64,000 bases of DNA from Podarcis muralis. Its lineage: Eukaryota. The DNA lies in NCBI RefSeq assembly GCF_964188315.1, contig NC_135666.1, positions 25,978,001-26,042,000 on the forward strand. The letters run 5' to 3'. The notes under the pieces are model-generated. The model worked only from the letters and a program-made list of their open reading frames with translations, ran no database searches and was not told where the DNA came from. Shown in pieces: positions 912-40,785 of the stretch; within the stretch, counting starts at the first letter, position 1; each line of letters starts with the position of its first letter. A program made the translations under genes and the position numbers.

Positions 912-2563
912 TTACATGCCTTTCCTCCTCCAAATCCAGGAACCGTTTGACAACTGCTCTTTAAATGTTTGTGAGTGCCTTCTGTAAGGTGATGTACGCA
1001 TCAGGAGTGAGCGACATTTTTGCTACTGAGGGCTGCGTACCCTCAAAGGAGAACTGTCTGGGGGCAGAGCCATGGCAGGCAGGGCTGGTCTCCCACAAAT
1101 GCTTTCTCTCTTAAGATCATCATTACAGCACACTCTTTGACTCCCACACCTGCCGTGATCCATCCATCCATTTGCACACACATCAATTGCGCACATACAC
1201 AAACCCACAAAAGGGACATTTTTGGATGCCTTTTTGACACACAGATCCAAGTTGAATTCACACTTTCGAAGAGCCCAACTCTCCCTGCCTGTGTGTAGAC
1301 AAGTGAGGCTATGGGACCAGAATCTGTGAAAGTCCATCTTAAATGAAAGGCACCATTCACTATCTTTCCTTCTTGAGGGCTGCTAGGGGCCTGAGAAGCT
1401 GCCAAGTCAGATGTTTGGTCTTATCTAACTCAGTACTGTTGACGCTGACTATCAGCAACTCTCCAGGGTTTGAGGCAGGCATCTTTCTGATCCCTGTCTG
1501 GAATTGCATACCTTCCAAGTGCCCCGTTCAAAATGGGACATCCCATTCTTTCATGCGAGATCTCGGCAGCCATTTTGGATGTTGTAATCTTGCGCGCTCT
1601 CATGGTGCGCTCCCCTCAAAAAAGCGCTTTTGGGGGAGGGGCAAGAGCAATGTGCGGGTCATGTGACTCACCTGGGAGCACGTCCTGGAAGACACATGTC
1701 CCAATTTGGGGCTTGAAAAAGTTGGACAGTACGGAATTGTCAGGGGTTGAACCTATGACCTTCTGCGTGCAAAGTAGTTTCTCCACCACTGAGCTATGTC
1801 CCTTATGAAATACTAAAACCCCAATATGGAGACCACTAACTGTTTCACATGATACACATAACATTTGAAAGATTCTTATTCCCTGCACTGGCCCAGAGAC
1901 ATGCAGACTCTGCAATCTAGCATTGTGTATCCACCATCTGGGGATGGTGGCTGTGTTGATTTGCAAGTGTGGCATGTATAGACAACAGCACCCAGCAGGG
2001 GTAAGAAACTTTTATTTAATTGTTATGCCCACTGCATGGAGAACATGCTCTGACAGTCTCCCCAAAGGGGAACCTTCCATTTCAATCAGAAGCACAAACA
2101 TCACCACTGAAATTAATATGGAAGTGAAAAAGGTACTTATCCTACTGCCATTGGAAAAGGTAAATTATTCTCACCCACTTCTGCAAAGCTCTTGGGCACG
2201 GCAAACAATTTATTTTGTCCTAAAGCTCAACTCCGTTGCAATAGTTGTACACAGACAATGCAACTTTGCTAGCAACTTGGCTTCACTCCGTAGATATTTT
2301 CTCTTCGAATCTGTAGTGAAAGAGCAGATAATGCAAAAAATAAATATGTAAATCTTATTTTTCCTTCCAAAAAAGAAAAGACAGATATATTATTTAATTC
2401 TCTTCAAAGTGTCAAGCCTTCCTTAAGCATGAATGAAAGATTGGGCCTCTGTGCAGGTGTTTGAAATCAGGAGTAATCTTGCCATCTAAAAGCCATTCAT
2501 TTTGCCAACAGGATACATTCTGGATTGACCCTTGACCTCCCTGCTGGTGTTCTTTTGTTACAG

Positions 2564-2656
2564 GCCTTGCGCGTGCTGAGCTGCGATTACAAGATGGAAA
2601 ATGAAACTAGAATGGTGATTTGTGACCTTGGGAACCCCATGGCAGCTGGAACAAAT
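2564..2656 (+). CDS. ITGA8: Integrin alpha-8, coding exon (human exon 21 equivalent), [31 protein letters not shown]
   Basis: cag|GCC acceptor, AAT|gtaag donor, 93 nt. Matches recalled human [31 protein letters not shown]. Confidence 0.96.
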
Positions 2657-3599
2657 GTAAGACAACACCAGAAACGTTTGCTGATTTTTATCAAATTGAA
2701 TTGTTTGGGGGAGTTAATGGAAAACTGCCTCAATTAGGGGAATTTGTGTCAATAAGAAGCAGCTTAAAAAATAGATATATTTGGCCAGGAAATGGTTCGT
2801 ATAATAGAAGACAGCATTACATTATATTTTAAAAAAGATAATAGTCTGATTGGTTAACTTATTTATGAACCAGGCCACAATCCATTTGAAGTAATCAGCT
2901 CATATTCTGGCAAATTAATTGTACCTGAGTACTTAAGTGCACACTTGTCTGATTGCTTTCACTGAGATTTAGACTCCAGTCCTATCCATTTGCCTGATAA
3001 TAAACCCATTGAACTCTAAGCCTCACTTAATACTGTACATTGTATAATCCTTGACAATGCAATCCTTTACATGTCTATTCAGAAGACATGTGAAAAATGG
3101 CACTGTCAAGGATTATTCCAACATACTCTGGCTTACATCACTTCTGAACAATTACTGAATGTAGGTACATACATCTGATTCGGAAAGGAATGTCTCCACT
3201 AAGGACAATTCACTTGAGAATTTCCACGGTCTGATTATATTATTTGTTTTGTGATGGGTGGAAACACTAAAATACGTTACTCTTGATTGTTATCATGGTT
3301 TTGTTGACATCAGAGTCATCTGAATCACAACTAACATTAGAAGTGCATTTATTTGCAAACAAAAATATGAGTGGAAAAAGCAGCAATTGCTGGTACCCCC
3401 TTGGTATTTTCTGTGATGGGATGGACTTTAAGATCATTATATATGACTGTTGTTGATGTTGTTGTTGTTGTTGTTTTGCTTGAAATGCCAGGGGATATAT
3501 AGATAATTCAAGCAAACTTAATTGCATGTGTTAAAACATGAAAGTGTGTTCACCTATATTTATGGCATTGGGGGAAAATCTATTGATGGATAAGTTCCA

Positions 3600-3925
3600 G
3601 AGAACTGATTATTGGGTTGATTGGAACAGGTCCCCTATGAGGATGGGGTTTTTGTCAATTAAAAAATAGGTGTGTAGGGGGTGGGGAGATGATAGAAGTG
3701 TGCAAAGTTTTTACGCCTTCTCTCATAGTGCTGGAACCTGCAGCTATCCTATGTTGGAAGACTCAGGGCAGCCAAAAGAAGTGTTTCTCCACACAGAGCA
3801 TAGCTAAACTGTTGAATTAACTGCAGACGCTGTAACAACGGCCACCAAATTGGACAGCTTTAAAAGGGGGATAATGAAAATTCATGTAGGATAAAGGCTA
3901 TTAATTGTCATTAGTCCTGATGGCT
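3600..3925 (+). mobile_element. Decayed CR1 LINE 3' fragment
   Basis: Resembles CR1 ORF2 C-terminus/3'UTR (GGGGAGATGATAGAAG..., GCCACCAAATTGGACAGCTTTAAAAGGGG..., TTAGTCCTGATGGCT). Heavily mutated, boundaries approximate. Confidence 0.55.
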
Positions 3926-3984
3926 GTTTACCACATTCACTGTTGTGGGCAGTGTGCCTCTGAATAACGCTTGCTGGGAATTGC

Positions 3985-4161
3985 AAATTGAAATACTTTA
4001 TTGTCACTTGTACAACTTGTATATAGTGAGATTACACAAGCCCCCCCCCAGCTCTCTAAGTCTTAATCCCCCTCGTTTACTGACACACACACACCAAACC
4101 CGAAAGTCACTTGCCCTGTTGTTATCTTATCATTCAGCAGCCTAACAGCCCACAGATAGAA
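3985..4161 (-). mobile_element. Rex1/Babar LINE, extreme 3' end (piece downstream of the hAT insertion)
   Basis: Minus strand encodes FYLWAVRLLND, the RT C-terminal (NSF)YPxAxRLLN motif, then a 3'UTR ending GTGACAATAAAGTATTTC. Confidence 0.8.
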
Positions 4162-4224
4162 CAGTGTTTCCCAACCAGTGTTCCGCGGCACACTAGTGTG
4201 CCGCGAGACGTTGCCTGGTGTGCC

Positions 4225-5200
4225 GTGGGAGGGAGGCGGGCGAGTCAGGCGGTGAGAGGCGGGGCGGCGGCGGCGAGGAGAGGCCGCCCAGCGCGGGGCT
4301 CTCCCCGTCTGCCTGCCTGGCTGCCTGCGTGGCGCTGACGTCACGGGGCTGTAACGTGCCCCACATAGGCACACGCGGGGCAGCGAGCGAGCTCCCTCCC
4401 ACATCCCATCGCCGGCTCTGCACCAGGCGGTAGAGCTCGGCGAAGTCGCCGCGCTGGAAGGCCAGCAGCGCGCGCGCCTTGGCCAGGCTCTCGCCCGCCT
4501 GCGCCTCCAGGCACGGCGCCTCGGCGTCGGGCGGCAGCGAGCCCAGGAAGCGGCCCAGCCGGCCGGGGTCGCCCGCCTGCAGCAGCGCCTCGCACCCGCA
4601 CGAGACCTGCTCCGCCGAGAAGCGCGGCGAGCGCGGAGGATCGGGCGTGGCAGAGGCCAGCCCCGCGCTTGGAGAGGACGCAGCAGCCGTCGCCAAACCC
4701 GATCCTCCTCCTCCTGCTCCGCCGCCGTCCTCTGGCTCTCGGCCGGGAGGAGCCTGCGGCGACGGGGCGGGCGCCGAAGTTGGCGCGCCTCCTCGGCAGC
4801 GCCTTCGTCCTCCTCCTCCTGCCTCTGCTCTCCTCCGGCGGCGGGGGCGCGCCGCCCTCCCCGGCCGGGGGGCTCGGCGGGGCCCGCGGGGAAGGAGGCC
4901 ATGTTCGCAGCGCGCGGGATCGCGGCCCCCCTCGCCCGCCTCCGGCCCACTCCCCTCCCCCTGCGCGCTGCCCTAGCTGTGCGGGTCTCCTCCCCCTGCA
5001 CCGCCGTCCCCTTTCCACATCCTAGGAGCCGCGGTCCGCCTACCGCCCCCGGGCCGCGGCGCGGCTCCCAGCCCGGGCTGGCCTCCGCCTCCTGGGACGC
5101 GCGCCCACCCCCGCGGCCCCCCAAACTTCGGAGCAACTCTCCAGACGCTCCTCCCCCGCCTCGGTCTCCCTCCTTTCCACTTCTCTTCCCCCCTTCCTTC
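4225..5200. promoter_or_regulatory. Ectopic CpG-island-like block inside the hAT cargo, with a palindromic CRE (TGACGTCA 4336-4343) and GC box (GGGGCGG 4261-4267)
   Basis: Very high GC and CpG density compared with the CpG-poor flanking intron. Motifs read directly from the sequence; activity unknown. Confidence 0.6.
4412..4902 (-). pseudogene. SIX5: SIX5 exon-1 fragment (N-terminus plus N-terminal part of the SIX domain), frameshifted and truncated, no homeodomain
   Basis: ATG at 4902 (AACATGG) gives MASFPAGPAEPP...EEARQL, resembling human MATLPAEPSAGP...EEARQL. A different frame at 4621-4412 gives FSAEQVSCGCEALLQAGDPGRLGRFLGSLPP...KARALLAFQRGDFAELYRLVQSR, resembling human SIX5 FSPEQVACVCEALLQAGHAGRLSRFLGALPP...RARALVAFQRGEYAELYRLLESR. 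LLQAG and FQRGE are SIX5-type rather than SIX4-type. Confidence 0.9.
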
Positions 5201-5766
5201 CCTCTTTCTTTCTCTTTCTCTCCCACCCGCCTTTCCTTCTATTAACTTTCCTTTCCCCTCCCTTCGTCCTTCCTACTTTTACTCCTGGGCTCCTCCCCCC
5301 TTTGCGCAGCCACAAATCAATCTCTCTCTCTTTTTTCCCCTCTCTCTCTTCTTTGCTCAGACGCAAAAAAGCGCCGCTTTTTGGAAATCCGGACTGCTGT
5401 CCCCGCTGAAACGATACTTTGAAAAAGGAAGAACCCACTGGCTCTTATTTCTGTTTAAAGCAGTAGATCCCGAACTCTTTTGGCCCACTGCCCCCTTGGT
5501 TCCACATCCCCCAGTGTCCCCTATGCTTACTCTATAGAAAGCATTACAGGGGTTAACGTGGCTCGCTAAGGAAGATATTAATAGAATTCTGCATTTGGGG
5601 GGAGACCCTAACAGTCATCTACCATTACCTTCTATGCTGTTACTATTTTTTATTTTTTTTTTACATAAGTAAAAAGTGACCTTTCCCCATCTGGCATGGT
5701 GGTGTGCCTCGAGATTTTTTTCATGAAACAAGTGTGCCTTTGCCCAAAAAAGGTTGGGAAACACTG

Positions 5767-6215
5767 AGATAGAAGCTGTTCTTTACCTTCTTGGTGCGAC
5801 TAATCATGCTTCTATATCTTCTGCCTGAGGGCAGGAGATCAAGAAAGTGCCAGCCAGGGTGTGAATCATCCCTGAGAATTTTCCTCACTCTCCTGAGGCA
5901 ACGTTCTTCCGCTATTTCATCCAGCAGATTCACGGGACAGCCCATAATATCTTGTGCTGTATTCACCACCCACTGTAAGCACTTCCTATCAGTATATGTC
6001 AAACCAGTGTACCACACCGTGATGCAGTATGAAAGGACACTTTCTATTGTTGACCGGTAGAAGGAGATCATCAGATGTTGATTGACATCGTTCTTCCGCA
6101 ATACTCTGAGGAGATGGAGTCTCTGTTGGGCTTTCTTAACCACCTGGGTTGTATTTATTTACCAAGTAAGGTCTTCACTGAGATAAACTCCTAGGAATTT
6201 AAAGGAAGATTTAAA
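5767..6215 (-). mobile_element. Rex1/Babar LINE reverse-transcriptase C-terminal fragment (5'-truncated, in-frame stop at 6159-6161)
   Basis: [34 protein letters not shown]...FYRSTIESVLSYCITVWY...LLPSGRRYRS...KNSFY, typical of Rex1/Babar RT. Confidence 0.88.
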
Positions 6216-6592
6216 TGGGGGAGAGTGCTGTTGTATTCGGGTCCTGATATCAGGCTTTCCATAATTATATGGTTGATTACTGCAATAACAGGATGCTGGA
6301 CTAAATGGGCCTTTGATCTGACCCCAAAGGGCTCTTTTTATGTTCCCACTTACTAAACTGAGTAAAACGCTGTGCGTTAGTCTCTGTGGAGTTTTATTGG
6401 TGGCATATGTGAACCTCATTTGCCTCTTATTACCAGGAGTGTCAAGGACCAAAAGCCACCTTTAAAAACTGTTGCCACACAGAGGCGTCATCTGCTACTC
6501 ATTAGTACCTTACAACAGGAGTGTAATTTTGTTCTATGTAAAGTCTCAAAGTGAGGCTCATGTGTTGATCATCAGGACTGTAGTGCATATTA

Positions 6593-6726
6593 CCTGTATA
6601 GGGAAGCCTTTTAGTATGTAATGTTTTATTGTGTTTTTATATATGTTGGAAGCTGCCCAGAGTGGCTGGGGCAACTCAGTTAGATGGGCAGGGTACAAAT
6701 AAAAAAGTAAAAATAAAATAAAATAA

Positions 6727-6775
<49 letters not shown>

Positions 6776-7080
6776 TTTCCCCAGCCACTCTGGGCAGCTC
6801 CCAACAGAATATTAAAAACACAATAAAACATCAAACATTAAAAACTTCCCTAAACAGGGCTGCCTTCAGAAGTCTTCTAAAAGTCAGATAGTTGTTTATT
6901 TCCTTGACATCTGATGAGAGTGTTCCACAGGGCGAGCACCACTACTGAGAAGACCCTCTGCCTGGTTCCCTCACTTCTCGCAGTGAGGGGACTGCTGGAA
7001 GGCCCTCAGAGCTGGACCGTAAGTGTCTGGGCTGGATGATGGGGGTAGAGACACTTCTTCAGGTATACTGGTCCAAGGCC
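6593..7080. mobile_element. Two L2-type LINE 3' ends arranged tail-to-tail around a (TA)n tract
   Basis: + copy about 6593-6730 (GCTGCCCAGAGTGGCTGGGG...GGGCAGGGTACAAATAAA), (TA)n 6731-6772, - copy about 6774-7080 (CCCCAGCCACTCTGGGCAGCTCCCAAC...). Family assignment recalled. Confidence 0.7.
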
Positions 7081-7499
7081 CAGTTATTATTATTACCTAA
7101 GTTATGACTTTTGGGCAGGTGCATTAAAAATATAAGAGCTTGTTGGAACAGGCCAGAGCCCTGTCTAGTCCAGTATCCTGTTCTCATAGAAGCCAACCAG
7201 ATGCCTAAGTGAAGCCTATAAGGATATGAGGACAATTTTTCATTCTCCCTTCTAATTGTATACAGCAAGTCTGGCAATCTTATTTCTTTATGGAAAAGAA
7301 TACCTATTAGCTCTTTATGTAGATGAGCAGGGAGTGGGCAACCACAGTTTGAAGAATTATTTGCACCCCTATACATTGGTATACCTTGCATTTCCAAATG
7401 GCACCATCTAGGGCCAATTTAGACCATCTGAGGGCTATCGCCTTTAAATGTAGTGCAGTCAAATGCTCACAGTTCTAATTAGTGAATTTTGACTCCTAG

Positions 7500-7579
7500 T
7501 TTTCTACAGGCATCCGGTTTACTGTTCAGCGTTTTGAAAATGCCGAATTCAGCATCCAGTTTGAACTGCAAGTGAGAAG
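7500..7579 (+). CDS. ITGA8: Integrin alpha-8 exon (22), FSTGIRFTVQRFENAEFSIQFELQVR-S
   Basis: tag|TTT acceptor, AG|gtaag donor, 80 nt, phase 0 to 2. Homologous to YSLGLRFAVPRLEKTNMSINFDLQIRS. Confidence 0.93.
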
Positions 7580-8967
7580 GTAAGCTGTGATCCAGGAGAC
7601 TCAATCTGAGTATTGAAAAGCGTATGGAGCTGAAAGAGGAAGTAGGAAAGAGTGCTACTTTCCTAACTTCCTCCTTTAGCCATACGTAGTTTTCAAGGGA
7701 GAAAAAGGTAATCACATTCACCACCTCATGACCAAGTTGCTGGTGGGTGTGTGCATGTTAAAGGCTTTAGGAGCACCAAGAAAAACCTCAAGGGTACCGT
7801 TAAGGTGCCATGCTGGTAATTTCTGCTCTATAGTGTGTATTTAGCAGAGGGGTAAGAAATAAAATTTCTTTTTCTTACCTTGAAAGGGTAGGAAAGCCTC
7901 CAAAAGATAGTTTCTTTCCTCCAGAGATTCTCCATCATTCTCAGCAGTAACAAAGGAATGGTCAAAGCAAAGTTTACAAAGCAGAAGGCGGTTTATTACT
8001 AGTCCAGTCCACATGTCCATGAATTTGGTGCAGTTGCTACAGAAGGAAAGATTACTGGATAAGAGACATATGTCATGGGGCTTTTCCAAAGAGCAGCTAT
8101 CATCACTCTAGATGTCTTTCCTAACCACATCACAAGATCAGTCTTCAGAAGTCCTGAGTTTTGTTGCATTACTGGAACATGTAATCTGATTACTATCATA
8201 GTAAATATATTTTCATGTTGATATAATAATATATAGGTACTTGAAGTAGAAATGAGACATATTTCTTTATTTAATTAAATGTGTGCCTCTTTTGTTAGCA
8301 TTTTTAAAACTTGTGAAATCAGCCTGTATGAGTAGTCAGGAGTGTGGTTAGAGCTGTGATTTCTCTCTACACAAAGTAACTCTGGAATAAACTGGTAGAT
8401 TACAAAGATTACAAAGCATGTGGTATATTACAAAGACTGAAGCTAATGCAACAGGTGATTTTTCCAGGTGTTCTGCTTGCCAGCTCGGTGGTGCATAGAC
8501 CCTCTGGAAATATTTCTATACTCTTCAAAGTATGGCACAAATGCTCTCTCTCTTATTTCTAATATTTCTTCCTTTTCATTGAGGAATGATAATCGCTACT
8601 CCTTGATCCATGTCACCTCTCTTAGCAATTGACCAATAATGTTGGAAGGAAGGTTTTATAACCTATATCCTATTTTGGGTAGGTTATTATTAGGATATTG
8701 GGAGAAGAATGTGGAGGAAGAACCACTTCCTTCAGAGTTATCAATATACATGTGACGTTTCCTTGTTTCATGAAGACCCAGGCCTTATCTGTTATTCCAA
8801 TGGCCCCAGACAGTTGGGTGCATCTTCCACTACCCTGCTCCATCTCTCAAAGAGAGAATTGTTAATTTGATAAGTGCTATAGCCCTGAGCACGATAGGCT
8901 TAAGCAAAAAATGCTTTCAGGTTTATATATGTGAAACATAATTAACCTTTGCACAAATTTCTTTTAG

Positions 8968-9048: not shown

Positions 9049-12000
9049 GTAAGTACATTTTGTATTCAGGCTGGACATTTTAAAAAGAACCTAACCATAA
9101 CTGTTTGCTTAGCTTACTGTGAGTGGGCAATAGTTAGGCCACAATGTTGATTGGTTCAAAAATGGGATTGGGCTCAAAAGCAAGCTGGTCCTACCATTAA
9201 GTAGAATGAGTCATATATCGGTTGCAGGTGCTGGAGTGAGGTGGAAGGAAAAGCAACCTACAATTCTTCCTGAGCTATTCTCATCTGTTAGATGACAGAT
9301 CTGTGTGTGTCACTTGGTCCTACCTGTGCCTAGACTGCTCTGTGCCCCCTCAAGCTCACCTGCCACCCTCGGATGTGTTGAAGAACACTGTCCCATTGCC
9401 AGTGTGGATCGTAGGAGCCAACTTGTAGGGACCGAGGGGTCTTTGGCCCTCCCAATAAAATATTTGAGGGGACCAACCACCCACCCTCCCACCTCCAAGT
9501 TGATGGGCATTGCCATTCAAATGGTGTGTGTGCACCGCATCATGTGATCAGTTATGCAGGGCAGGGCTTACCTGCCCCTCCCCGCAATACTTTGTTCGAG
9601 TTGGCGCCCCTGGTCCAGTCTAGTCATCTTCTGTACATGGATTGCGGGGTTCGTTTGCACCCTTCTGTCCTTTGCCTCAGGCACCAAAAAGTCTCAGGCT
9701 AGCCCTGCTCAATAGAACTTTCTCATTCGGAATTTCCACTGATTACTCATTCTGCCAAGAACAATTCCTCATACAAAAAAGTCCAATGCGCAGGAGCTTG
9801 AAGTTCTGACCCTACCACATCATACAAATGGGCAGGTTGTATATTTGCGACTAGGTGTATTAACTTCGTTATGGGGATTAAAAACTTACTGTGCTTTGTA
9901 TATTTGTCCCCCTTCCCTCTGTCTAACTTTGAGCTACATGACAGATGGCACAATGTGCCCCTCTCCATATCTATTGTGGTTGTTTCTGCACATTTGGTTT
10001 AGCACTGGGCATTAGTGCTTCCTTCGCATTCAGAATCCCTACACTAGGAACTCTAGAAAATGTTTTTAAAAGTTAGAGAGAATGGAGCTGGCGGACCCAC
10101 GGCTTTTGTTTTCTTAATCGAGTTTAGATGTGGATCATAGCCCAGAGAGCTCCACCAGGTTGCCCAAGGGCTTCTGTGCACTCAGCGGTACTCCCTGGGA
10201 GCAACATTCCCACACAGTCTCACAAATTGCTCTTGAAAGCTCTCCAAGTTTCCAAACCAGTTCACATTGCACCATGGAGAACACTTCTTCGTGGAAATAT
10301 GGCCAAAGGTCCACACGACACATGGAACTAATTGAGCAATTCACTGGAGAGTGGCCAGTTTCCTTAATAAAATATCAGCAATCTTAAGTATACTTTTATC
10401 AAACGCGTGCATATTCCTATGCATCTACTTCGAGTCAAGTGCCTAAATGTAAACATCTGTTGCTAAGAAGGAGGCAGGTGAAGAAATAAAAAGAATAGTA
10501 CAGGATGTTAAAATCCTATGGCTGGACATAGCCAGTCTTAGCCATAACTCTGCGGCTTCTAAAAGTGCATCCTGCCTTTGCAGGACTTGGGAACATCACA
10601 TAACATGGAAACGTCTCATGATCTTCAAAGGGTATTAAAATGGATGCTGTTTATGAAATAATACATCTTTGGCTGGACAAACACATCTTAAACTTTCCTT
10701 CCTTCCTTTGCTTCTTACAAAGCAATTTCCCTTTAAAATTAAATGTTTACTAAAATTCTTGCTGTTATCTATTCAATTTATATACTGCCCTTTATCAAAA
10801 GAGCCCTGGATGGTGTACGACAATAAGAACACATTGCAGAGCATCAGTAATAAAAAACATAAGGAAAAGCATAACAACAGACATCACCATAATAAAATAA
10901 CCGTAATGTTTCCTTATCGTTAATCATGGGTATATTTAAATGGATATATTGTAATTTTTGCAGTCTGTTTCCTTGCATTGCTATTAACTATTTAGAAAGA
11001 CTGTTGAAGCATGTTCTCTATAAACTGAGAGGTGCCCCCCTCAAGCTGAACAAACAGGCATTTGTGTGAAGATGGAGCGGTGGTCTCTTTGGAAGGACCC
11101 TGTGATTAATTTCATGCACAATTGCCTCTTCCTTAAAGCCTGGAGATTCATGCCGTAATGAGAAACCCAACATTCCTAATATTCCTCTCTGCCATACCAA
11201 GAGCCTTGGCAAGCTGTTGTATCATTATGGGGAGGCAGAACGCAAGGAAGCCCTACTAGGCAGTATCTATACATTCATCCCGTTCCCTCTTTCTTTATTC
11301 CCTCAAACATGGATGCTGGGTAACTAGGACTGAAGCTTGGCTGTGGTGGAGAAGCTCACATACAGGAAAGGGGATTTTGGGGGGTGCAATGAGGAGGAGG
11401 TAGGCTGAACCTTGTCAGCATCTACCAAACCATAAGGCTGCTTCTCACAGCAATTGAGTTTGCTGCAGTTACATAGGTGTTTTCCATAATAAACACATTA
11501 TTATTTATTATTCCCACAATAAACATATCTGACATTCAGATGTACTGTCAAACCAAGGTTTTGGTTCTACAGGAATGGAACCTAATGGACCTTTGGTTTC
11601 AGGTTCTTTCTCCTCCTATTGCATTATGCAATCTCCTCCACACCCCCTCTTGCTGATTCGTGGCAAACCATAGATTACCATGTTTACCCCTGTTCGATCC
11701 TGGTTTACTAGGCCAAATTACAATCAGTTTTGAGTCTAGTATGCCTCTTGCCAATGTATGTAGTTCTCTACAGCTCTCTTCTTAGCCTCACAGCAATGCT
11801 GCACAAAGGATCAGGCTAAGAGAGACAGTGACCAGCACAAGGGTGTCCAGCAAGTTTCCAGGCTCAAGAGGAATTTGAACATATGTCTCCCTTGTTCTAG
11901 ATTAGGGATAAGGAACCAGTGGCTCTCCAGGAGCTGTTGGACTACAGCTCCCATCAGCCCCTGCCAGCAAAACAAGGGGTTATGGGAGTTGCAGTCTAAC

Positions 12001-12646
12001 GAAATTAGCCATATGTGTTCACCGTTCCTGTTCTAGGCCGACACCCTAAACCAGGGGTGGGGAACTGGATCTGGTAGCAGGCCAGATTCTTCCTTCCCTC
12101 ACCACTTGTGGGTCAACTTTGAGAGGTGGGCAGTGCCAACCACCTGTCATTCATCTGACACCATTATGGCTTCATATGGCAACTTGAAAGGGGCTCCTTT
12201 TGAAGTCCACTTCAATACAAAACTGCTTGCAAATGGACTTTCAAAGGCAATGTCTCACCGATCAGCTAATGGGCACTAAGAGGCATCACTTTGAAGTGTG
12301 TTTCAAATAGTTTTCAATGCAAACTGCTGCAAACTGACTTTTAAGTGATGGCAGCCACGCCTTTGCTTGCCTCTCACCTGACATCACATATGACATCAAG
12401 GGTGGGGCAGGCGGGCATGGTTTGGGGAAAATAACCATTTGCTAAACACAATACCATGCTCCCACACTTTTAAAAAAGCTACATGGGCATCTGACGGTAT
12501 ATGCTCATAGAAAAATTCCCACATGCTTGCAGTCAATTTCTAGTTGTTATCATACATAACCATTGTTTTCTTAAATCAGATTTAATGTTTTCCAATTGTA
12601 TAACAGACAATTGATCAGATAGGGCTGTGCTATTGTACCATTTCAG

Positions 12647-12752
12647 AGTCTCCCATCCTCCACAAATCATTTTGCCAATTCATAACTGGGAACCAAAAGA
12701 TGAACCTACTAAAGAAGATGAGATTGGACCTTTGGTGGAACACATATACCAG
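12647..12752 (+). CDS. ITGA8: Integrin alpha-8 exon (24), [36 protein letters not shown]
   Basis: tttcag|A acceptor, CAG|gtaaat donor, 106 nt. Near-identical to human [35 protein letters not shown]. Confidence 0.97.
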
Positions 12753-13793
12753 GTAAATATGCATATACAAATGAACCATTGACTTCCAAGGGATTTGTTG
12801 GTATAATGTTCCCCAGACAAACCGTGAAATTATTCTTTGCCAGCGTTTGGGTTCTAGATTTTGGCCAGCCAGCAACATTTTGCATGCAGCAATGCTGAGT
12901 GAACTTCTGAGCTGTTTGTGAGACGTGCCTCTGTCAGTTTCAAGCACAGCCACCACGAAACCCACAAAAAGTGAAGTTGCCTTGGCAAGATTGAAATTGA
13001 CAGAACTGTATGTGGAACCAGATGATACACACATGTTTGTCAAGAGGTATCCGGTATTAATAACAGGAAATTATATTAGAATAAATGTTGTTTTTAAGCA
13101 TGAAAAGCATGCCTTTGAACATCACACATAAACACACCTATTAAAAAACTCTTTCCCCACTTCTTGAAACCTGAAAAGGAGTCAGTCCACTCTGGGTCAT
13201 CTTCCAACCAAATTAACCTGAACATGGGTGAGATTTCCTCACCCTTCACAATGCTCCTGCCCCAGATATGGCCACATTCAGCTGGGAACTAGAAGTTTCA
13301 ATAGAACTCAATTGGGCATTAGGGAGTGAGGAGAGCTCTAGAATGGGAACACAGAGCCTGTGACTCTCCAGATGTTTCCAGACTCCAACTCCCATCATTC
13401 CTGACCACCAGCTTAGCTCTCAATTGGGAAAAGAATGACCCAGCTGTGTTTACACAGCCAGAGTTGAAAGGAGGAGCCAGCAAGAAAGTCGTTTGGCGCA
13501 AAAGCTACATAACAGGCCAAGAGAATTTATAGGCTGTGAGCAATTACCCAGGAGAAAGTTGGCATGCCATGAAGAGAGCTGTGAGGACATAGGATTGCTA
13601 GGTAGAATCAAGTGCATGGCAAGAGAATTCAGCTGGTTTTGGCTTCTGTCGCCACACCATTGCAACCTGGCAACCAGCACCAGAAAACATTGGGAAGGGA
13701 AGGGGCAGAATTGATGTGAATGAACAAGCTGTATCTTGGGCTGCAGGATTCCAGTTCAATTTATTCTCCTCTTTGTGTGTGTCTACTCCATAG

Positions 13794-13952
13794 CTGCAGA
13801 ACATTGGGCCAAGTGCCATCAATGATACAGTCTTGTATGTGGAATGGCCAGTTCTGAGCAGAAAGGAATTCCTTCTTTACATCCTTCACATTCAGACACA
13901 TGGACCACTGCAATGTCAAACAAGCTCTGCAATCAATAGTTTGGAAATAAAG
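13794..13952 (+). CDS. ITGA8: Integrin alpha-8 exon (25), LQNIGPSAINDTVLYVEWPVLSRKEFLLYILHIQTHGPLQCQTSSAINSLEIK
   Basis: ccatag|CTG acceptor, AAG|gtaggg donor, 159 nt, phase 0-0. Confidence 0.96.
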
Positions 13953-15391
13953 GTAGGGGACTTACATGGAGTTTCTTGGTTCACCTATATGGAGCAACTG
14001 TTTATTTTCTCAAACTTCCAACCAGGACTCTGCAATCGTCATCTGAGGCCCTTCTTTGTTTGCCTCCTCCACAGGAGGTCTGGAAGATGGCAACACGAGA
14101 AGGGGCCTTTTCTGCAGTGGCTCCCAGTTTGTAGAATGCTCTCCCCAGGAAGGCTCACTTGGCACCTTCATTACATATCTTTAGGTGCCAGGCAAGAACA
14201 TTCCTCTTCTTTCCAGGCCCTTGGCTAATTAAATAATTCACCTAATTCCCCCTTTCTAAAACAATATGTGAGCTAAAACATAGCCATTTTTTGAAATACA
14301 AAAGCTTCTCTGAATTTTGCAACACAGTTCTCAAGCCAAGCAACATGCATAAAAATGCATGTATTGGTGAAAATAACATGCACAAATGTATTAGGGAGGA
14401 AATGCATACAAAAAACGTGTGTATTAGGCAAAATTGCATACAAAAAAAAATGTATATTAGGAGAAATTAACACTTTAATGCTGATGAAGTTTCATTTATT
14501 AGTTTCATTTATTTATTTAATTTCTATACTGCATTATATTTTCAAGAAAAATCCCAAAGCGGTTTACAGCATATTGAATCAATAAGACATAAATAAAACA
14601 ATCTGAAGAAAGACAAATATAGAGTATACAGTCAAAGCAACATAACAGAAAACAAAAAAATTATCTTAAAGATTTCATAATAAAACATTACAAAGGAGCT
14701 CAACTACAGAATATATATTTAACATAGTAGGGCTGCGTGAGTGTGGGCCCCGCTCCCTAGGCCAGGTGGAAAAGGCCTTGTGGGGGAGCGGCCTTCACAC
14801 CTTATAGCCGGGCGATGATCCTCCGGCCTCATGAGAACTTTTTTCCAAAAATAATTGCAAAGTGATGTGGAAATGTGGAGAACTGAATTTAAAATTCAAA
14901 AAAATGAGAAACTCAGAGAAACTGCCCCTCCCTCCCTGTCACATGAAGCAGGTCTTTGCCTCTCTCTCTTTACTTCCCCCAACTATGCCTTTTTCTTTCT
15001 GCTTTTCTTTCTGTCATGTGTGATGTGTTCTAAACTGTATTATTATCTTCATTGCTCTCCCACGAGATCTTTCCAGTTGTTTGTTTCCTGGAGTAATACC
15101 AGGATCACTTTTATTGCCAGCATTGTCATATGAGCTGTATAATGTTTTGCTTTAATTTGTTCAGCCCTGGTGAAAAATTGCACATTTATTCTAGTCGCAC
15201 GACTCGCATCAGAATACAATTTCTCTCTGCTTCTTCCAAAGTTGACGTCCTCCTTATGTTGCAGAGAAGCAAAAAAAAAAATGAGACTAAAATAATTTTA
15301 TTGCAATTATGAACAAAAAATTGATATTTGGAGCCATTCATCCAAAGGTCCCCCACCCCACATTGCAGTGCGAAAGTCCTCAGTTGGAATA

Positions 15392-15696
15392 CAGTGGTGC
15401 CCCACAAGACGAATGCCTCGCAAGACGGAAAACTCGCTAGACGAAAGGGTTTTCCGTTTTTTGAGTCGTTCTGCTAGACGAATTTCCCTATGGGATTGCT
15501 TCGCAAGACGAAACGTCTTGCGAGTTCTTGCGAGTTTGTTTCCTTTTTCTTAAAGCCGCTAAGCCGTTAATAGCTGCTAAGCCGCTAAGCCACTAATAGC
15601 TGCTAAGCCGCTAATAGCCGTGCTTCGCAAGACGAAAAAACCGCAAGACGAAGAGACTCGCAGAACAGATTAATTTCGTCTTGTGAGGCACCACTG
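15392..15696. mobile_element. Tc1/mariner-type MITE (CAGTGGTGCC TIR family)
   Basis: TA|CAGTGGTGCCCCACAAGACG...CGTCTTGTGAGGCACCACTG|TA, with internal GCAAGACGAA and TAAGCCGC repeats. Same family as 58672-58958, in opposite orientation. Confidence 0.88.
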
Positions 15697-16127
15697 TAAT
15701 TCATTTCCCAGAAAGTAAACACACACACACTCAACCTGATCCTGATCATACCAGAAGTATTTACTGGTACCAAAAAATAATAACAACTACCCACAAGATT
15801 TCTAGAAATCAGTAGTAAATTTCTGCCTGGATGAAAATAAATGGAACCCTAGGCTCAGGAGTTTAATTAAAGCAAAATATCATCATGAAAGTTAATCAGA
15901 TGGCAAAAGAAACAAACCAATCCTGTTGTCTAGTCTTTAAAACAAAATATTTTACTGTATCCTTCCTGGCTGTAGTTAATCCTCTTGCTAGTAGAAGAGG
16001 GCAAAGTATCAGCTCTCAGGGTAGAGCTGTTAAACGAAAAGAAGAAAAGTCAATAGCAAACCCAAGATCTCTGTTAGAGAGCAATAGCAGAGTTATGTTC
16101 ACAGCTCTTTCTTCTTTCCCTTTGCAG

Positions 16128-16250
16128 TTTGCTGTCCCAGAGGACACTCCGGAACTCGCTGCTTTCTTACGCAACTCTTCCATTCCCCACTATGTTGGAC
16201 GGAGGGAAGCCAAAGTGGTGGACTATCAAAAGAACTCTGCAAAAGTTCTG
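16128..16250 (+). CDS. ITGA8: Integrin alpha-8 exon (26), FAVPEDTPELAAFLRNSSIPHYVGRREAKVVDYQKNSAKVL (heavy/light chain cleavage region)
   Basis: ttgcag|TTT acceptor, CTG|gtgag donor, 123 nt. PEDTPEL.AFLRNS.IPH conserved. Confidence 0.96.
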
Positions 16251-19200
16251 GTGAGATGGATGAAAGTTATAGTGCCGCACACTGAGGACTTTTGGGTGCA
16301 GTCTTAAGGATGAGTGGGGGGCTGTTGTTATTCTTGTGTTGGTATGACCAGTGACAACTGCACTTCCCTTCATGTTTGGGGGAGTATGCTGTGAGCTTTA
16401 ACTGCCTGTTCTTACACGGAGAAAGAACCAGAAGCAGAAACACTTATGTAATAGTTTATGGCCTACCACATATAACTACAGCTTGTCTGAAGGAATGTCT
16501 GGCAATTGAGCACACGGATCTGCAGTCCCGATGACCAATTTTTAAATGGTCAAATAAATATGAAATTTCTGACAGTAACCCAAAGGTGGTGGACACCATG
16601 CGCTCTTAGAGATACTGTTGCTTCCCAAAATCATCTAAATAAAACAAAACAATCTAAATATAATAATTTCACATATTGCCCAGGCTTCCCTCATTTTCAG
16701 GGATTTTGAAGGAGGGTCCTGCAAATTCTCGGCACCTTTAGCAAACTGCAGCTTCCAGGATTCTTTGGGGAAGCCATGACTGTTTAAAGTGGTACGATAC
16801 CGCATTAAAGGTATAGTGCAGACGGGGCCACACTAAGGAACCCTCTTCAGATCTTCCCACTTGCAACAGGAAGGTCATGGTGAAATGGGCATGGCCAGTG
16901 CGCATCCATCCATCCTCCTCCCCAGTTTGAGCTGTCACGTATTATTTTTTGAACACTAGGACAGCTGCCAACAAGAAACTCTGCTTATTTGTTTACCAGT
17001 TCTTCCAGATTTTTTTTTAAAAGACCAACATTTAAGTTTTCATTTTATTTTTTCTTGAAGCTTAATTTCTTTCATTTGTGGGGGAGGGCAGATGAGTTGT
17101 CCTCCCCTCAAATTTTAGGATGGGTGTGTTTTTTCACTCCCCCTTAGGTTTTGTTTTTTTCGTTCTGCAAAGCTTGAGATTGCACCAAGTCTACTGGTCC
17201 CTTGTGCCATTTTGGCTGCATAGAGTTTGTCACTCACCCCTGAATTTTGCAAATAGAGGGAATGATTTGGAGCAGGATTCAGATTATGCATGGGGAGGGG
17301 GGGGGGAGAGCTCAACAACTCTTCCATCCAGATTCTCACTGTTTGAAATATGGCAACCCTAGGAAAGAAATTCAAGAGAAAAATCTGAAATCAGTTATTG
17401 TTTTAATTTGGCAGTATGAAAATCTTCTTACGGTTATCTTGGTTTTTTATTCTAATTGCCAGAGACAAACTAAAATGTATTCTAAATTCCATGGAGACCA
17501 CCTTTTGTAAAATATTACCGCTCAGCCGTAAAAACTGTTTAATGCCTCATTATCTGTTATCTCCCACAATGACTGGCCTGCCTGTTTGCCAGTACAGATT
17601 CAACAACTGCAAATGCTTAGCCCCAATGTTAACTGTGTGTGGGATCTGCATTTTATATAGTAAAAACAAACAGAACCAGATCTTTTATTCAGTAGTTTGC
17701 TCCAACTACTATTGTGCTTGGATTTAGCCTGACAGCATTTGGTACTGTGTCTCTTTCTCATGTCATCTTTTGGATAGTGTAGAAGAGAGATGATTAAAGG
17801 GAGAGAAGAACACACTATTTATCTTGTGCTGCTTACACTGGTCTCAGCATCCCCCTGCCGTACTCACTCAGGGGCTCTCATGACAGCCTGCCTTGGTTTC
17901 TTGGGCAAGGAATGCCCCCCGTACACAATTCCATTGTGCACATCCTGGAACATCCCCCAGCATGGAGGGAGAACAAACATATTGAACTGCTCAAAACCTT
18001 GTGTGATATTAAAGTCCATGGATTGCAGCCCATGGCTGGGATTCAGAAAATCTACTTCTGGCAAGCCACAGGGTTTGCCTTAGCATAGTAGAATTTTTGA
18101 CATATTTCCCCCTCTAACAGCAAGCTCAGTGCCAAACGGTGTTTGGAATGGAGGGGAGTTTCAAAAGCAGAGTTACCATATGGAAGGTGGAGGGCAGGAA
18201 GGGTCTTATGTTTCTATGGGGGGGTGTTAAAACCCCTGTGAGTGCAGAAAAGTAATTGCAAGGTTCTTTGGATCCTGGGCTTATAAGTTCATCCAGTTCC
18301 TGCAATATTAACAAAAAAATCAACCTTAGAATGCAAATTACATACATCTGAAAAAAACCCTGGAATATCTGCTGAAGCCTTTCATTATGTGACTCTTTCT
18401 TTCATCTAGTGTGATTATGAATTGAAAAAATAATGCATACCTTGCTTGCTCCTACAAGACAGAGAGATAAACAAATCAAGCTAGATTAAAGAGTGATTAA
18501 ATAAGAGAAACTAAACAAACATGTCCTCTAAAACATTGCCTTTCAGTAAATTCTGTATAATCAAGGCCCTGCTGAGGAAGTGGATGGGAGCTGAGAAAAC
18601 ACAAGTTGAGAAAACACAATCTCTCATTCAGTTCTCATGGAGAACTGAACGTTTATGTAGCGTCACGTAATTTTCTGTACAAATTTAACTTTGCACCGCC
18701 ATTTAGGGAGTTCACAATCCAAAGCATCCAGTTCCTCTCTTAAGATACAATTGTGCGGAAAGAGCATCATTACACAGAAATGCAGGGCCCCTCGAGACTG
18801 TTGTTTTATTGCGGGTGTATTCTGTGACATGTTCTTGATGCAATGATACTGCGTTAGTGGTGGGTTTATTCTGCTTCTGCGGTTCTTCTCCAGTGCTACC
18901 ACATTATTGCTGTCCGGACCTGCTGTAAAGCAGGACCAAACCGAAAACAGAACATTTGTGGGGTATAAAAAGTTAAGGGATTTCAGCAAGACATTACAGG
19001 AGATGCACTGGTTGGAAATGAAGCAGTGTGACTCCCCAAAAATCTTTGCAGGTGCAAACAATTAGTTCGCATATGACCTCTCCTATAGCATCATGATTGT
19101 GCAATAAAAAAGATGCCTGGAGGAGCTCTAACATTAAAGTGTCAATTTCAGTGTTGGGGGAGTCAGGGATAACATAAAAGCTCTACAACTTGGTGTTTAT

Positions 19201-19837
19201 TGTGCCATAATATATGTATGTATGTTGCAGGTGTCTTCCTTTGTGCCCTTCAATTGATCCTCACTTCCAGCTGATCAGCTCTCAGTGTCACTAACTAACC
19301 TCGATGCTGATAATTCTTATCATAAACCTCATCAGTAGTCTTAGCTTAACTAAGCCAATTAGATGACCCATCCATGTATGTTTCATGATTTCCACACACA
19401 AGGTTTTCACCCAAGGGGTGCATTAGAGTCCACCATAATGGAGACCCCACTAAAATTCAACCCCAAGTAAAATTCAAATATGTTGTTTCCTCAATTTTAA
19501 AGTTTACATGGGATTTTAGTTAAATAACAAAAATGAAACCATGAGAGTATTGTGTTGAATGAAATCTGCTAATTCTCCACTGCGGAAACCTAGGTTCTAC
19601 ACAAGTGTCTCCAAGGAAACATAGATTCAATTCTTATGACTATATATGCGTTTTAAGTAATTCCTTTTTATTTTTTATTTAATAAAAAAACAACACACAA
19701 ATTCAGTATACTTTTCCTTTCCAAAAATGAAAATCCATCTTGCTGGGAATACACATGGCATGCAGGACACACTGTTTGTTAATGCATTTGTCTAGATCCC
19801 AAAAGATAGTTAGAATGCCGTATTGTTTCCTGTACAG

Positions 19838-19951
19838 AATTGCACAAATGTGGAGTGCTTGATGATAACTTGTTCAGTGGGACTCTTAGAAAGAGGGAAA
19901 AGTGCTGCACTGAAAATACGGTCTCGTTTGTGGGCTTCAACATTTCTACAG
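19838..19951 (+). CDS. ITGA8: Integrin alpha-8 exon (27), NCTNVECLMITCSVGLLERGKSAALKIRSRLWASTFLQ
   Basis: gtacag|AAT acceptor, CAG|gtaag donor, 114 nt. Confidence 0.97.
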
Positions 19952-23612: not shown

Positions 23613-23798
23613 TGATACTAGGTCCTGCCTACTCAATGTCCGCGCATTTAGTGCAAACATCTGCAATGAGGCATCTGCTTGCATTCAGCTGAATACATGC
23701 ACGCAGAGGTAGATTTAGGGCATCACAACCAGTTCCTCCCCCCTCACAGGGCACCGAGCCAAGAGGGCACCTTGCTGCCTCCTTCCCAAAGTCTAGTA

Positions 23799-24029
23799 CA
23801 GTGGTACCTGAGGTTACAAACACTTCGGGTTACAAACGCTTCAGGTTACAGACTCCGCTAACCCGGAAGTAGTACCTCAGGTTAAGAACGTTACCTCAGG
23901 ATGAGTACAGAAATCGCTCGGTGGCAGCGGGAGGCCCCATTAACTAAAGTGGTACCTCAGGTTAAGAACAGTTTCAGGTTAAGAACGGACCTCCGGAACG
24001 AATTAAGTTCTTAACCAGAGGTACCACTG
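23799..24029 (+). mobile_element. Tc1/mariner-type MITE (CAGTGGTACCTC TIR family)
   Basis: TA|CAGTGGTACC...GGTACCACTG|TA, with internal CAGGTTAAGAAC repeats. Confidence 0.9.
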
Positions 24030-24240
24030 TATGCACTTCAGGAAGGAGGCATGAGGGCTCTGACAAGGTCCTAGAATCCTCCTTCCTTCTTCCCAAAGCC
24101 TAGTTAGCACTTGCCCAGCTTTGGGAAGCAGATGGGAGGACTTCCAACATATATGAAAATATTAAAGAACTTCCCTATACAGGGCTGCCTTCAGATGTCT
24201 TCTAAAGGTTATCTTACCTGGCTTGGGGGTCGCATAACTC

Positions 24241-26946: not shown

Positions 26947-27175
26947 CAGTGGTACCTCAGGTTACAAACGCTTCAGGTTACAAATGCTTCAGGTTACAGA
27001 CTCCGCTAAGCTCGGGTTAAGAACTTTGCTTCAGGATGAGAACAGAAATCGTGCAGCAATGGTGCAGCAACAATGGGAGGCCCCATTAGCTAAAGTGGTA
27101 CCGCAGGTTAAGAACAGTTTCAGGTTAAGAACGGACCTCCGGAATGAATTAAGTTCTTAACCAAAGGTACCACTG
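26947..27175 (+). mobile_element. Tc1/mariner-type MITE (CAGTGGTACCTC family)
   Basis: TIRs with TA TSD; colinear with 23799-24029. Confidence 0.9.
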
Positions 27176-29514: not shown

Positions 29515-29739
29515 CAGTGGTACCTCAGGTTACATACGCTTCAGGTTACACACGCTTCAGGTTACACACTCCGCTAATCCAGAAATAGTGCTTCAGGTAA
29601 AGAACTTTGCTTCAGGATAAGAACAGAAATCGTGCTCTGGCGGCGCGGCAGCAGCAGGAGGCCCCATTAGCTAAAGTGGTGCTTCAGGTTAAGAACGGAC
29701 CTCCGGAATGAATTAAGTACTTAACCTGAGGTACCACTG
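29515..29739 (+). mobile_element. Tc1/mariner-type MITE (CAGTGGTACCTC family)
   Basis: TIRs with TA TSD; colinear with the other copies. Confidence 0.9.
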
Positions 29740-40546: not shown

Positions 40547-40785
40547 CAGTGGTACCTCGGGTTAAGTACTTAATTCATTCCGGAGGTCCGTACTTAACCT
40601 GAAACTTTTCCTAACCTGAAGCACCACTTTAGCTAATGGGGCCTCCTGCTGCCGCCGCGGCGCCAGAGCATTTCTGTTCTCATCCTGAAGCAAAGTTCTT
40701 AACCCAAGGTACTACTTCTGGGTTAGCGGAGTCTGTAACCTGAAGTGTATGTAACCTGAAGCGTATGTAACCCGAGGTACCACTG
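40547..40785 (-). mobile_element. Tc1/mariner-type MITE (CAGTGGTACCTC family), inverted relative to 23799/26947/29515
   Basis: TIRs with TA TSD; internal sequence is the reverse complement of the other copies. Confidence 0.9.

Follow-up and report, generated by a model that had tools for sequence, protein, structure and literature searches.

DNA transposons that carry pieces of host genes are already known from animals as Pack-TIRs. A survey of 100 animal genomes found 370 of them, 4 multicopy, and three copies of the frog element Pack-hAT-N8_XT; captures were nearly always single-copy and in many cases did not depend on transposition, and multicopy Pack-TIRs were attributed to transposition after capture (Tan et al. 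2021, PMC8277862). The main text of that survey contains none of the words "lizard," "Anolis" and "reptile." The element described here lies in a 64-kb window of Podarcis muralis DNA, the whole stretch analyzed, and its interior (4411-5621) derives from an identifiable non-TE parent locus, SIX5, the property that defines a Pack-TIR. Like Pack-hAT-N8_XT of Xenopus tropicalis, it is a non-autonomous hAT element with intact TIRs and TSD that carries a 5′ piece of a host gene. However, its sequence depth suggests a copy number in the tens to hundreds rather than three, and its cargo is 1.2 kb long, with a CpG-island promoter and a start codon. In Drosophila melanogaster, Ssk-FB4 was captured once and transposed repeatedly, leaving distinct TSDs, and fork stalling with template switching was proposed as the mechanism (Tan et al. 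2021). We propose the same order, one capture followed by repeated transposition, for the SIX5 element, but Ssk-FB4 carries a nearly complete, protein-making gene, whereas the SIX5 cargo is truncated and frameshifted.

Rice Pack-MULEs are DNA transposons that acquire gene fragments and then amplify them (PMC5861414). The SIX5 element has likewise taken up a gene fragment and appears to have multiplied it, although Pack-MULEs are plant elements of the Mutator superfamily with long TIRs and a 9-10-bp TSD. GC-rich 5′ ends are favored by rice Pack-MULEs. Helitron-amplified gene fragments are known from vesper bats (PMC4224331). There, too, a vertebrate DNA transposon reportedly carried the promoter and first exon of a host gene to numerous loci. 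The SIX5 element would likewise disperse a host promoter and gene start, but Helitrons are rolling-circle elements without TIRs or TSD that capture by read-through. Squamate genomes contain SPIN-like MITEs, short non-autonomous derivatives present in thousands of copies (Novick et al. 2011, PMC3014272); neither "captured" nor "host gene" occurs in that article. The Anolis elements SPIN_AC, SPIN_NA1_AC, hAT-N1_AC and hAT-N3_AC described there have a TIR and a central-TA 8-bp TSD like those of the SIX5 element, whose kinship with squamate SPIN elements is judged from its ends alone. Literature searches returned nothing specific on hAT gene capture in lacertids or Podarcis.

Ends and insertion site of the element

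The mobile element spans 4162-5766 (1605 bp). The perfect 15-bp TIRs, the perfect 8-bp TSD and the subterminal GGCACAC motifs that a sequence-only reading of this locus had reported were all recovered at these limits (Table 1). Only two matches to the TIR with up to 2 mismatches occur in the 64 kb, both at the ends of the element, against 0.24 expected. The element's 395 non-SIX5 bp hold 6 of the window's 16 copies of GGCACAC/GTGTGCC (about 0.1 expected at the window rate of 0.25/kb), and the 22-bp palindrome at 4184-4205 in the left arm is perfect. These repeats are putative transposase-binding sites of the hAT type. The left arm also has a GC-rich part with TGACGTCA at 4336-4343, and GC content is 73-80% over 4200-5100. 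No transposase was found: SIX1_SD was the sole Pfam domain when two minus-strand translations of the cargo, 4193-4696 and 4697-4902, were scanned, and the ORFs listed for the element are translations of GC-rich sequence. Therefore, the element is non-autonomous.

Table 1. Coordinates of the element and of its surroundings in the window
Feature	Position	Strand	Description
Integrin-alpha exon, Ig-like domain 2	2555-2659	+	Pfam Integrin_A_Ig_2, 7.7e-7; integrin alpha-V structures, 5e-8; upstream of element
Host LINE 3′ fragment, 5′-truncated	3942-6400	-	ORF split by element
Left TSD AGATAGAA	4154-4161		Identical to 5767-5774; central TA fits nnnTAnnn
Left TIR CAGTGTTTCCCAACC	4162-4176	+	15 bp; starts with CAGTG, the hAT terminal motif YARNG
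Left backbone arm	4177-4410		Non-SIX5; GGCACAC/GTGTGCC at 4187, 4196, 4218, 4368
SIX5 coding fragment	4411-4902	-	ATG at 4900-4902, N-terminal region, part of SIX (SD) domain
10-bp deletion between direct repeats	4775-4785	-	10 bases fewer than L001:10128
SIX5 upstream sequence	4903-5621	-	Promoter/5′UTR CpG island and distal AT-richer part; L001:9276-10000, 39 substitutions
Right backbone arm	5622-5751		Non-SIX5; GTGTGCC at 5702 and 5732
Right TIR	5752-5766	-	Reverse complement of CAGTGTTTCCCAACC, 15/15 complementary
Right TSD AGATAGAA	5767-5774		8/8 match to left copy
Last coding integrin-alpha exon	45511-45612	+	…CGFFDRARPP… then stop; Pfam Integrin_alpha cytoplasmic region, 2e-4

The terminal motif YARNG was defined for hAT elements in PMC3014272. 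The TIR of the element agrees with the first 15 bases of Anolis hAT-N3_AC (CAGTGGTTCCCAACCT) at 14 of 15 positions and with those of SPIN (CAGYGGTTCTCAACCT) at 13 of 15. A TSD of the form nnnTAnnn is the mark of Buster elements, to which SPIN belongs. The SPIN consensus is NYYTARRN, 8 bp with a central TA (Novick et al. 2011, PMC3014272). The TSD found here is compatible with the Buster form, as one copy where a consensus needs many. On the evidence of this one TSD and the likeness of the TIRs, the ends resemble those of SPIN-type (Buster-clade) hAT elements of lizards, in keeping with the Buster-type affinity suggested earlier.

The element interrupts a LINE fragment that matches Pfam ALKBH8_N (1.4e-13) and has a repeat depth of approximately 2,000x single-copy; we take its tail to be Rex1/Babar-like. 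When the element was excised in silico, joining 4161 to 5775, the sequence became continuous (...SGRRYRSMISRTKKVKNSFYLWAVRLLNDK...) and the reading frame of the LINE was restored. This restoration, together with TIRs and a TSD that bound the cargo, bears out the proposal that the SIX5 fragment arrived by transposition. Genomic contigs also contained uninterrupted paralogous copies of the LINE, seen as joints from 4153 to 5767 and as a loose end GCTGTTCTTTACC after 4161. These joints were considered as empty-site alleles, but their shorter side has 20-60 letters and the LINE has about 2,000 copies, and we read them as paralogues. Short-read contigs of both genomic runs, X1 and X4, end in the LINE flanks, and neither junction of the 4162-5766 insertion was bridged.

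Integrin-alpha exons flank the element on both sides, and a transmembrane exon of the same gene lies within 41030-41230. The element is therefore intronic, as had been proposed, with its cargo antisense to the integrin gene. The host gene appears to be ITGA8-like; the name ITGA8 follows from the GFFDR tail, which we take to be that of ITGA8.

The SIX5 cargo

The SIX5-derived core comprises 1211 bp on the minus strand (4411-5621) and corresponds to L001:9276-10517 in the native Podarcis raffonei SIX5 locus, with 95.8% identity over 1204 aligned columns; as this reference is a congener, part of the 4.2% difference is species divergence. In native coordinates the cargo consists of 725 bp of upstream sequence and the first 517 coding bases, with 11 substitutions relative to bases 1-517 of the P. 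raffonei CDS. The coding fragment breaks off at 4411 in mid-exon 1, midway through the SIX domain, and it matches positions 1-70 of the 113 in Pfam SIX1_SD (4412-4621, E 4.7e-13) and the SIX1 structure 4egc (6e-13). Its best protein matches are SIX5 from squamates, turtles and mammals, with no better match to a non-SIX protein, and its product is nearly identical to native lacertid SIX5 as far as ...LVQSR. The identification of the cargo as the 5′ end of SIX5 was thus upheld by alignment to the native promoter and exon 1. Its extent had been put at about 1.3 kb of non-transposon sequence, which is too long because 4177-4410 and 5622-5751 belong to the transposon backbone; neither arm matches the P. 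raffonei SIX5 locus.

The ATG at 4902 and some 70 codons of the SIX domain are both present, as first read, but they are not joined in one frame, because a 10-bp deletion near 4775-4785 shifts the frame after the 42nd codon. P. muralis gene model P0001 and native SIX5 read ARQLLPTSAP at this site, and the undeleted form was in no genomic contig placed at 4775-4785. No open frame holds a complete SIX domain and a homeodomain. Therefore, with the homeodomain missing, the SIX domain truncated and the frame shifted, the cargo cannot make SIX5.

Native SIX5 is present in P. muralis and Zootoca as well, as judged by protein comparison. We also considered whether the cargo simply lies at this native locus. 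The window is an integrin-alpha gene, and the cargo is the only non-repeat similarity that it shares with the P. raffonei SIX5 locus, the rest being dispersed repeats. The TIR was not found in the 30-kb native locus of P. raffonei, so there is no sign there of a resident hAT element beside the parent gene.

The CpG observed/expected ratio of the whole SIX5 piece is 0.92, compared with 0.94 at the native locus, and CpG transitions account for 9 of the 50 substitutions between the two. These values hint at little germ-line methylation and lend some support to an additional claim, that the dispersed SIX5 islands function as promoters or antisense units or as a source of SIX5-directed small RNAs. 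However, the cargo is covered by 0-12 RNA reads with all copies summed, and RNA contigs (X15) are nearly lacking at 4477-5546. In addition, all three RNA reads at the diagnostic deletion site carry the extra GAAGTTGGCA and are thus undeleted, as in native SIX5. We consider a function of this kind improbable.

Copy number and proposed origin

Multiplicity was assessed from contigs of X1 and X4, which come from different studies. Single contigs across the joint between SIX5 and backbone at 4411 have a word depth of 32-39x single-copy (3434 vs. a single-copy flank of 107 in X1; 675 vs. 17.5 in X4), and a 313-nt contig over 5353-5649 has a depth of 2045 vs. 17.5. Summed over contigs, depth is about 60-1250x single-copy across the cargo, a measure that, by the tool's own warning, should not be read as copy number and that differs several-fold between X1 and X4. 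Summed depth is far higher at the ends of the element: approximately 18,000-24,000x at 4156-4262, falling to 750-800x at 4370-4476, and approximately 1200-1600x at 5547-5653, rising to 8,000-20,000x at 5654-5760. In the left part, other family members diverge at 4225, 4287, 4332 and 4414, as marked by loose ends; on the right, loose ends lie at 5621 and 5696. The arms are a transposon backbone common to many more copies than the cargo. A joint from 4353 to 5696, present in 72 RNA reads, was considered as the backbone without cargo; at a DNA depth of just about 0.7-4x single-copy, it represents one or a few short relatives that are expressed, rather than the main form of the family.

At sites 4909, 5421 and 5559 the family consensus, at 117-400x single-copy depth, differs from the 4162-5766 copy. 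Gene model P0001 has the same chimeric joint as this copy but a different flank, which is absent from the window. That P0001 is merely a spliced gene model is conceivable, but the 10-bp indel and several substitutions inside it point to another copy. The two also have in common a derived V>G change (SCGCEALL) that none of the three native lacertid SIX5 proteins in the comparison has; the same breakpoint and the same derived change argue for a single capture. The composite sequence was found under three further organism labels (B, C and D), which hold 0.75-0.85 of the words of 5480-5751, equal to organism A. Neither P0001 nor the 167-aa chimeric ORF, used as protein queries, led to additional lacertid models of the element. 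The suggestion of a mobile lizard family therefore gains support from word depth in the contigs, from a second gene model and from the other organism labels, and the loaded element appears to have spread to roughly a hundred or more sites. Although the kind of element is known, such a copy number is unusual for a gene-carrying DNA transposon of a vertebrate.

We favor, with a probability of roughly 0.8, the view that this is a non-autonomous SPIN-like hAT copy whose interior was replaced by 1211 bp of SIX5, most likely captured once, and which has reached on the order of 10^2 sites. The backbone would have been a hAT element of approximately 0.4 kb, and the segment that replaced its interior would have been copied from the lizard's own SIX5. 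This was most likely a single event, and template switching during double-strand repair of an excision gap or during replication is a likely route. Since both TIRs and the subterminal GGCACAC motifs were kept, the loaded element could be moved by a transposase encoded elsewhere. Such mobilization in trans, probably by a transposase of the Buster clade, would have carried it to its roughly 10^2 sites; the 4162-5766 copy would have landed in the LINE fragment of the ITGA8-like intron, making the 8-bp duplication.

Three other accounts of the locus were weighed against this one. The element may be a low-copy Pack-hAT of 2-10 copies, its high depth coming from foreign GC-rich low-complexity contigs placed at 90% likeness. 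Much of the cargo is 75-80% GC, and both the tool's warning about summed depth and the disagreement between X1 and X4 would fit this account. Nevertheless, long single contigs with 0-2 mismatches reach 32-117x, including the non-repetitive 5353-5649 and the unique chimeric joint, and we regard the low-copy account as unlikely. A resident hAT element of the intron could also have had an internal break filled with SIX5 in place, without transposition. Although animal Pack-TIRs arise in this way more often than in any other (just 4 of 370 being multicopy; Tan et al. 2021), it is very unlikely for an element whose chimeric joint is many times single-copy and recurs both in a differently flanked gene model and under other organism labels. 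The GC-rich 5′ ends of genes are easily mis-assembled, but the view that SIX5 is present here as an artefact of assembly, a segmental duplicate or a retrocopy can be dismissed almost entirely, given the exact TIRs and TSD as boundaries, the LINE frame restored by excision, the 725 bp upstream of the ATG, a mid-exon stop without poly(A), and the recurrence of the joint in independent runs.

Implications for lacertid genomes

A loaded element multiplied approximately a hundred-fold in a vertebrate would depart from the mostly single-copy captures of the 100-genome survey, and its load includes the CpG-island promoter and start codon of a developmental gene. Copies of the element contaminate gene annotation, one being present in UniProt as a SIX-domain protein (A0A670I980), and they will interfere with the mapping of reads at SIX5. 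As a natural experiment, such a family would bear on how DNA transposons acquire host DNA, on whether dispersed promoter islands stay unmethylated, and on whether new transcripts or small RNAs arise against the parent gene. More tentatively, and at somewhat less than an even chance, lacertids may carry a SPIN-like hAT lineage, still young, in which CpG-island gene 5′ ends are captured again and again, each amplified to tens to hundreds of copies. If true, such a lineage of recurrent capture would be a vertebrate counterpart of the rice Pack-MULEs, scattering unmethylated promoter islands.

Ends of the element and its insertion site

The DNA at 4162-5766 is a 1605-bp element without a transposase that is bounded by terminal inverted repeats (TIRs) and a target-site duplication (TSD), carries a contiguous promoter and partial first exon, and is present in many copies, their number being estimated from depth. 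Perfect 15-bp TIRs, a perfect 8-bp TSD, a 22-bp palindrome and subterminal GGCACAC motifs had been claimed by the sequence-only reading, and all four were confirmed. A search of the 64-kb window for the TIR, allowing up to 2 mismatches, returned 2 matches only, the two element ends (0.24 expected from shuffles). The 22-nt palindrome (4184-4205) is perfect, and 6 of the window's 16 GGCACAC/GTGTGCC heptamers lie within the element's 395 bp of non-cargo. GC content is 73-80% over 4200-5100 compared to ~40% in the flanks.

Boundaries of the element and integrin exons in the window
Feature	Position	Strand	Description
Left TSD	4154-4161		octamer AGATAGAA, outside the TIR
Left TIR	4162-4176		CAGTGTTTCCCAACC (15 nt)
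Right TIR	5752-5766		exact reverse complement of CAGTGTTTCCCAACC
Right TSD	5767-5774		octamer AGATAGAA, identical to the left copy
Integrin-alpha exon, Ig-like domain 2	2555-2659	+	closest solved chains alpha-V
Integrin transmembrane exon	within 41030-41230
Integrin cytoplasmic exon	45511-45612		CGFFDRARPP...stop

On the minus strand, the flanks of the element are a LINE 3' fragment, whose tail Pfam names ALKBH8_N (1.4e-13) and whose C-terminus is presumably of the Rex1/Babar-like type. In-silico excision of the element plus one octamer, which joins 4161 to 5775, gave an unbroken ...SGRRYRSMISRTKKVKNSFYLWAVRLLNDK... reading. Many uninterrupted paralogues of this LINE are found in contigs of two genomic runs; past 4161 they run on as GCTGTTCTTTACC..., the window sequence at 5775, and their joints from 4153 to 5767 have 8 ambiguous letters, equivalent to the single-octamer form. 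Given the TIRs, the TSD and the restored LINE frame, transposition is the only reasonable route, in support of the earlier claim that the SIX5 fragment arrived in this way. Neither junction of the window insertion was bridged in independent reads. The interrupted fragment itself (3942-4161 and 5775-6400) belongs to a family at ~2,000-2,700x single-copy word depth (that of unique flanks in the same run) in genomic contigs, also represented among RNA contigs.

Since integrin exons lie on both sides, the element sits in an intron, with the SIX5 segment running antisense to the host gene, probably ITGA8 to judge from GFFDR with this tail. Farther along the window, two ORFs at 52149-52913 (minus) and 52988-54178 (plus) have 254 residues in common and contain a GIY-YIG-like motif (YEIPCKVCPATYIGQTNRR...), which indicates a Penelope-like element duplicated in inverted orientation. 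A GC-rich tandem repeat (56199-56504; 119-bp unit, 2.6 copies, 88% matches) lies ~10 kb past the integrin gene's last coding exon.

The SIX5 cargo

The minus-strand ORF at 4193-4696 matches positions 1-70 of the 113 in Pfam SIX1_SD (4.7e-13), as well as the SIX1 crystal structure. An exhaustive protein search placed the peptide with SIX5, at 86% identity to Varanus and tuatara, 71% to the snake protein XP_070620829 (with the N-terminal MASFPA... region covered) and 68% to marsupial SIX5. Near-identity to native lacertid SIX5 (Podarcis raffonei, P. muralis and Zootoca) extends as far as ...AELYRLVQSR, beyond which the native proteins continue as PFGAPHH... whereas the element has unrelated sequence.

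For the cargo alignment we used the native SIX5 locus of the congener P. raffonei (L001, with SIX5 at 10001-20412). Window positions 5621 to 4411 align with L001 9276-10517 in one block of 1204 columns, 95.8% identical to this congeneric reference, with nine indels and 50 substitutions (39 across the 725 bases upstream, 11 across the 517 that are coding); outside the cargo, the window and L001 share short dispersed repeats only. The SIX5-derived cargo is therefore 1211 bp (4411-5621), smaller than the ~1.3 kb of non-transposon cargo first proposed. Judged by this alignment, it corresponds to the SIX5 promoter/5'UTR followed by coding bases 1-517 and stops midway through exon 1. The claimed content (SIX5 upstream/5'UTR, an ATG at 4902 and ~70 SIX codons) thus stands, but the ATG does not share the frame of the SIX domain because one of the nine indels, near 4775-4785, has removed 10 bp between direct repeats.

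L001 also contains, on the strand of SIX5, another gene that encodes both a SIX domain and a homeodomain (29671-30412); it starts ~9.3 kb downstream of SIX5. A SINE-like dispersed repeat of ~250 bp (L001 8993-9250) stops ~26 bp short of the captured segment's distal end, and the window has at least four copies of this repeat (23797-24032, 26945-27177, 29513-29742 and 40537-40790).

Copy number and other members of the family

The contigs aligned to the window came from two genomic runs, X1 and X4, that belong to separate studies.

Depth over the element; summed word depth does not equal copy number
Region	X1	X4
Unique flanks (single copy)	107 and 66	17.5 and 13
Terminal ~100 bp, each end (summed)	0.9-1.9 million	0.35-0.42 million
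Inner arms 4370-4476, 5547-5653	~800-1600x single copy	~740-1230x single copy
SIX5 cargo (summed)	26,000-134,000	1,100-8,200

The ends reach, in order of magnitude, 10^4 times single-copy depth; for the cargo, the multiple is ~250-1250 in X1 and ~60-470 in X4. Because of the limit on summed depth, we relied on single long contigs. The chimeric joint at 4411 is crossed by a 154-nt X1 contig (4386-4539, 0 mismatches; depth 3434, 32x single copy) and by its X4 counterpart (depth 675, 39x), and a 313-nt X4 contig on non-repetitive 5353-5649 has a depth of 2045 (117x). At 4909, 5421 and 5559, essentially all aligned contigs, at 117-400x single-copy depth, differ from the window copy; this copy thus belongs to a larger set, from which it has diverged slightly. 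Loose contig ends at 4414 and 5621 mark family members with the arms but without the SIX5 piece.

The 380-residue Podarcis muralis gene model A0A670I980 (UniProt) is 98% identical to the window copy over 120 residues spanning the SIX5/backbone joint. They also share a V>G change, which does not occur in the native SIX5 of any of the three lacertids compared. The model continues across the TIR into a tail (SKEQNILHSTHPLTHQD) that the window does not encode. When 5480-5751, a stretch across the cargo/arm joint, was searched against sequencing runs, three more organism labels (B, C and D) matched at 0.75-0.85 of sampled words, the range among runs of organism A. Together with the contig depths over the joint, these matches and the gene model support the guess of a mobile family.

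The 10-bp deletion is absent from A0A670I980, native SIX5 proteins and 3 of 3 RNA reads, all with the undeleted form (ARQLLPTSAP), which is in no genomic contig aligned there; the three reads, a tiny sample, probably derive from the native gene. In the raw RNA run, more than 100 reads per bin fall at the hAT ends and 0-12 per bin on the cargo, all copies summed; RNA contigs are almost absent over 4477-5546. Position 4353 is joined to 5696 in 72 RNA reads, which have 52 start points, and in a small number of DNA contigs of low depth; somewhere in the genome there is strong transcription of a short cargo-less relative of the element. The CpG observed/expected ratio is 0.92 in the cargo versus 0.94 at the native locus; of the 50 cargo substitutions, only 9 are CpG transitions. 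This retention fits either youth or a lack of germ-line methylation.

Transposon class and origin

No transposase was found: a Pfam scan of two cargo translations gave SIX1_SD only, and the element's ORFs are translated GC-rich sequence. Nor did an autonomous partner emerge. The TIR matches the first 15 bases of Anolis hAT-N3_AC at 14 and of SPIN at 13, two families with the TSD NYYTARRN in Anolis (Novick et al. 2011, PMC3014272). SPIN is a Buster element, and nnnTAnnn is the Buster TSD consensus. We infer that the mobilising transposase would be of SPIN/Buster type. Since SPIN-type hATs are noted for horizontal transfer, a link between the lizard element and the insect MITE hAT2_NA of Manduca sexta is possible. 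Over its first 14 nt (4162-4175), the lizard TIR equals the one reported for hAT2_NA (CAGTGTTTCCCAAC, 8-bp TSD; PMC3845634).

Depth estimates suggest a backbone of ~0.4 kb (4162-4410 and 5622-5766) with ~10^3 copies, part of a family that numbers ~10^4 ends. One backbone would have exchanged its middle for SIX5 sequence, and the loaded form would then have reached some 10^2 copies, a figure also estimated from depth. Capture may have occurred by template switching, either while the gap left by excision was being repaired or where a fork had stalled (FoSTeST, the model of Tan et al. 2021 for multicopy Pack-TIRs; PMC8277862). Microhomology at the cargo joints is at most 1 nt. Later mobilisation may have been in trans, by a SPIN/Buster-type transposase.

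Amplification of a promoter and first exon by a vertebrate DNA transposon has already been demonstrated for bat Helitrons, so the concept is not new. Among animals, 370 Pack-TIRs were reported in 100 genomes, 208 of them hAT, and only 4 of the 370 were multicopy, the frog case having three copies; 'lizard', 'Anolis' and 'reptile' are absent as words from the main text of that study (Tan et al. 2021, PMC8277862). The element described here belongs to the same kind, but it stands out by its apparent copy number, as estimated from depth, and by a cargo that comprises the CpG island and start codon of a developmental regulator.
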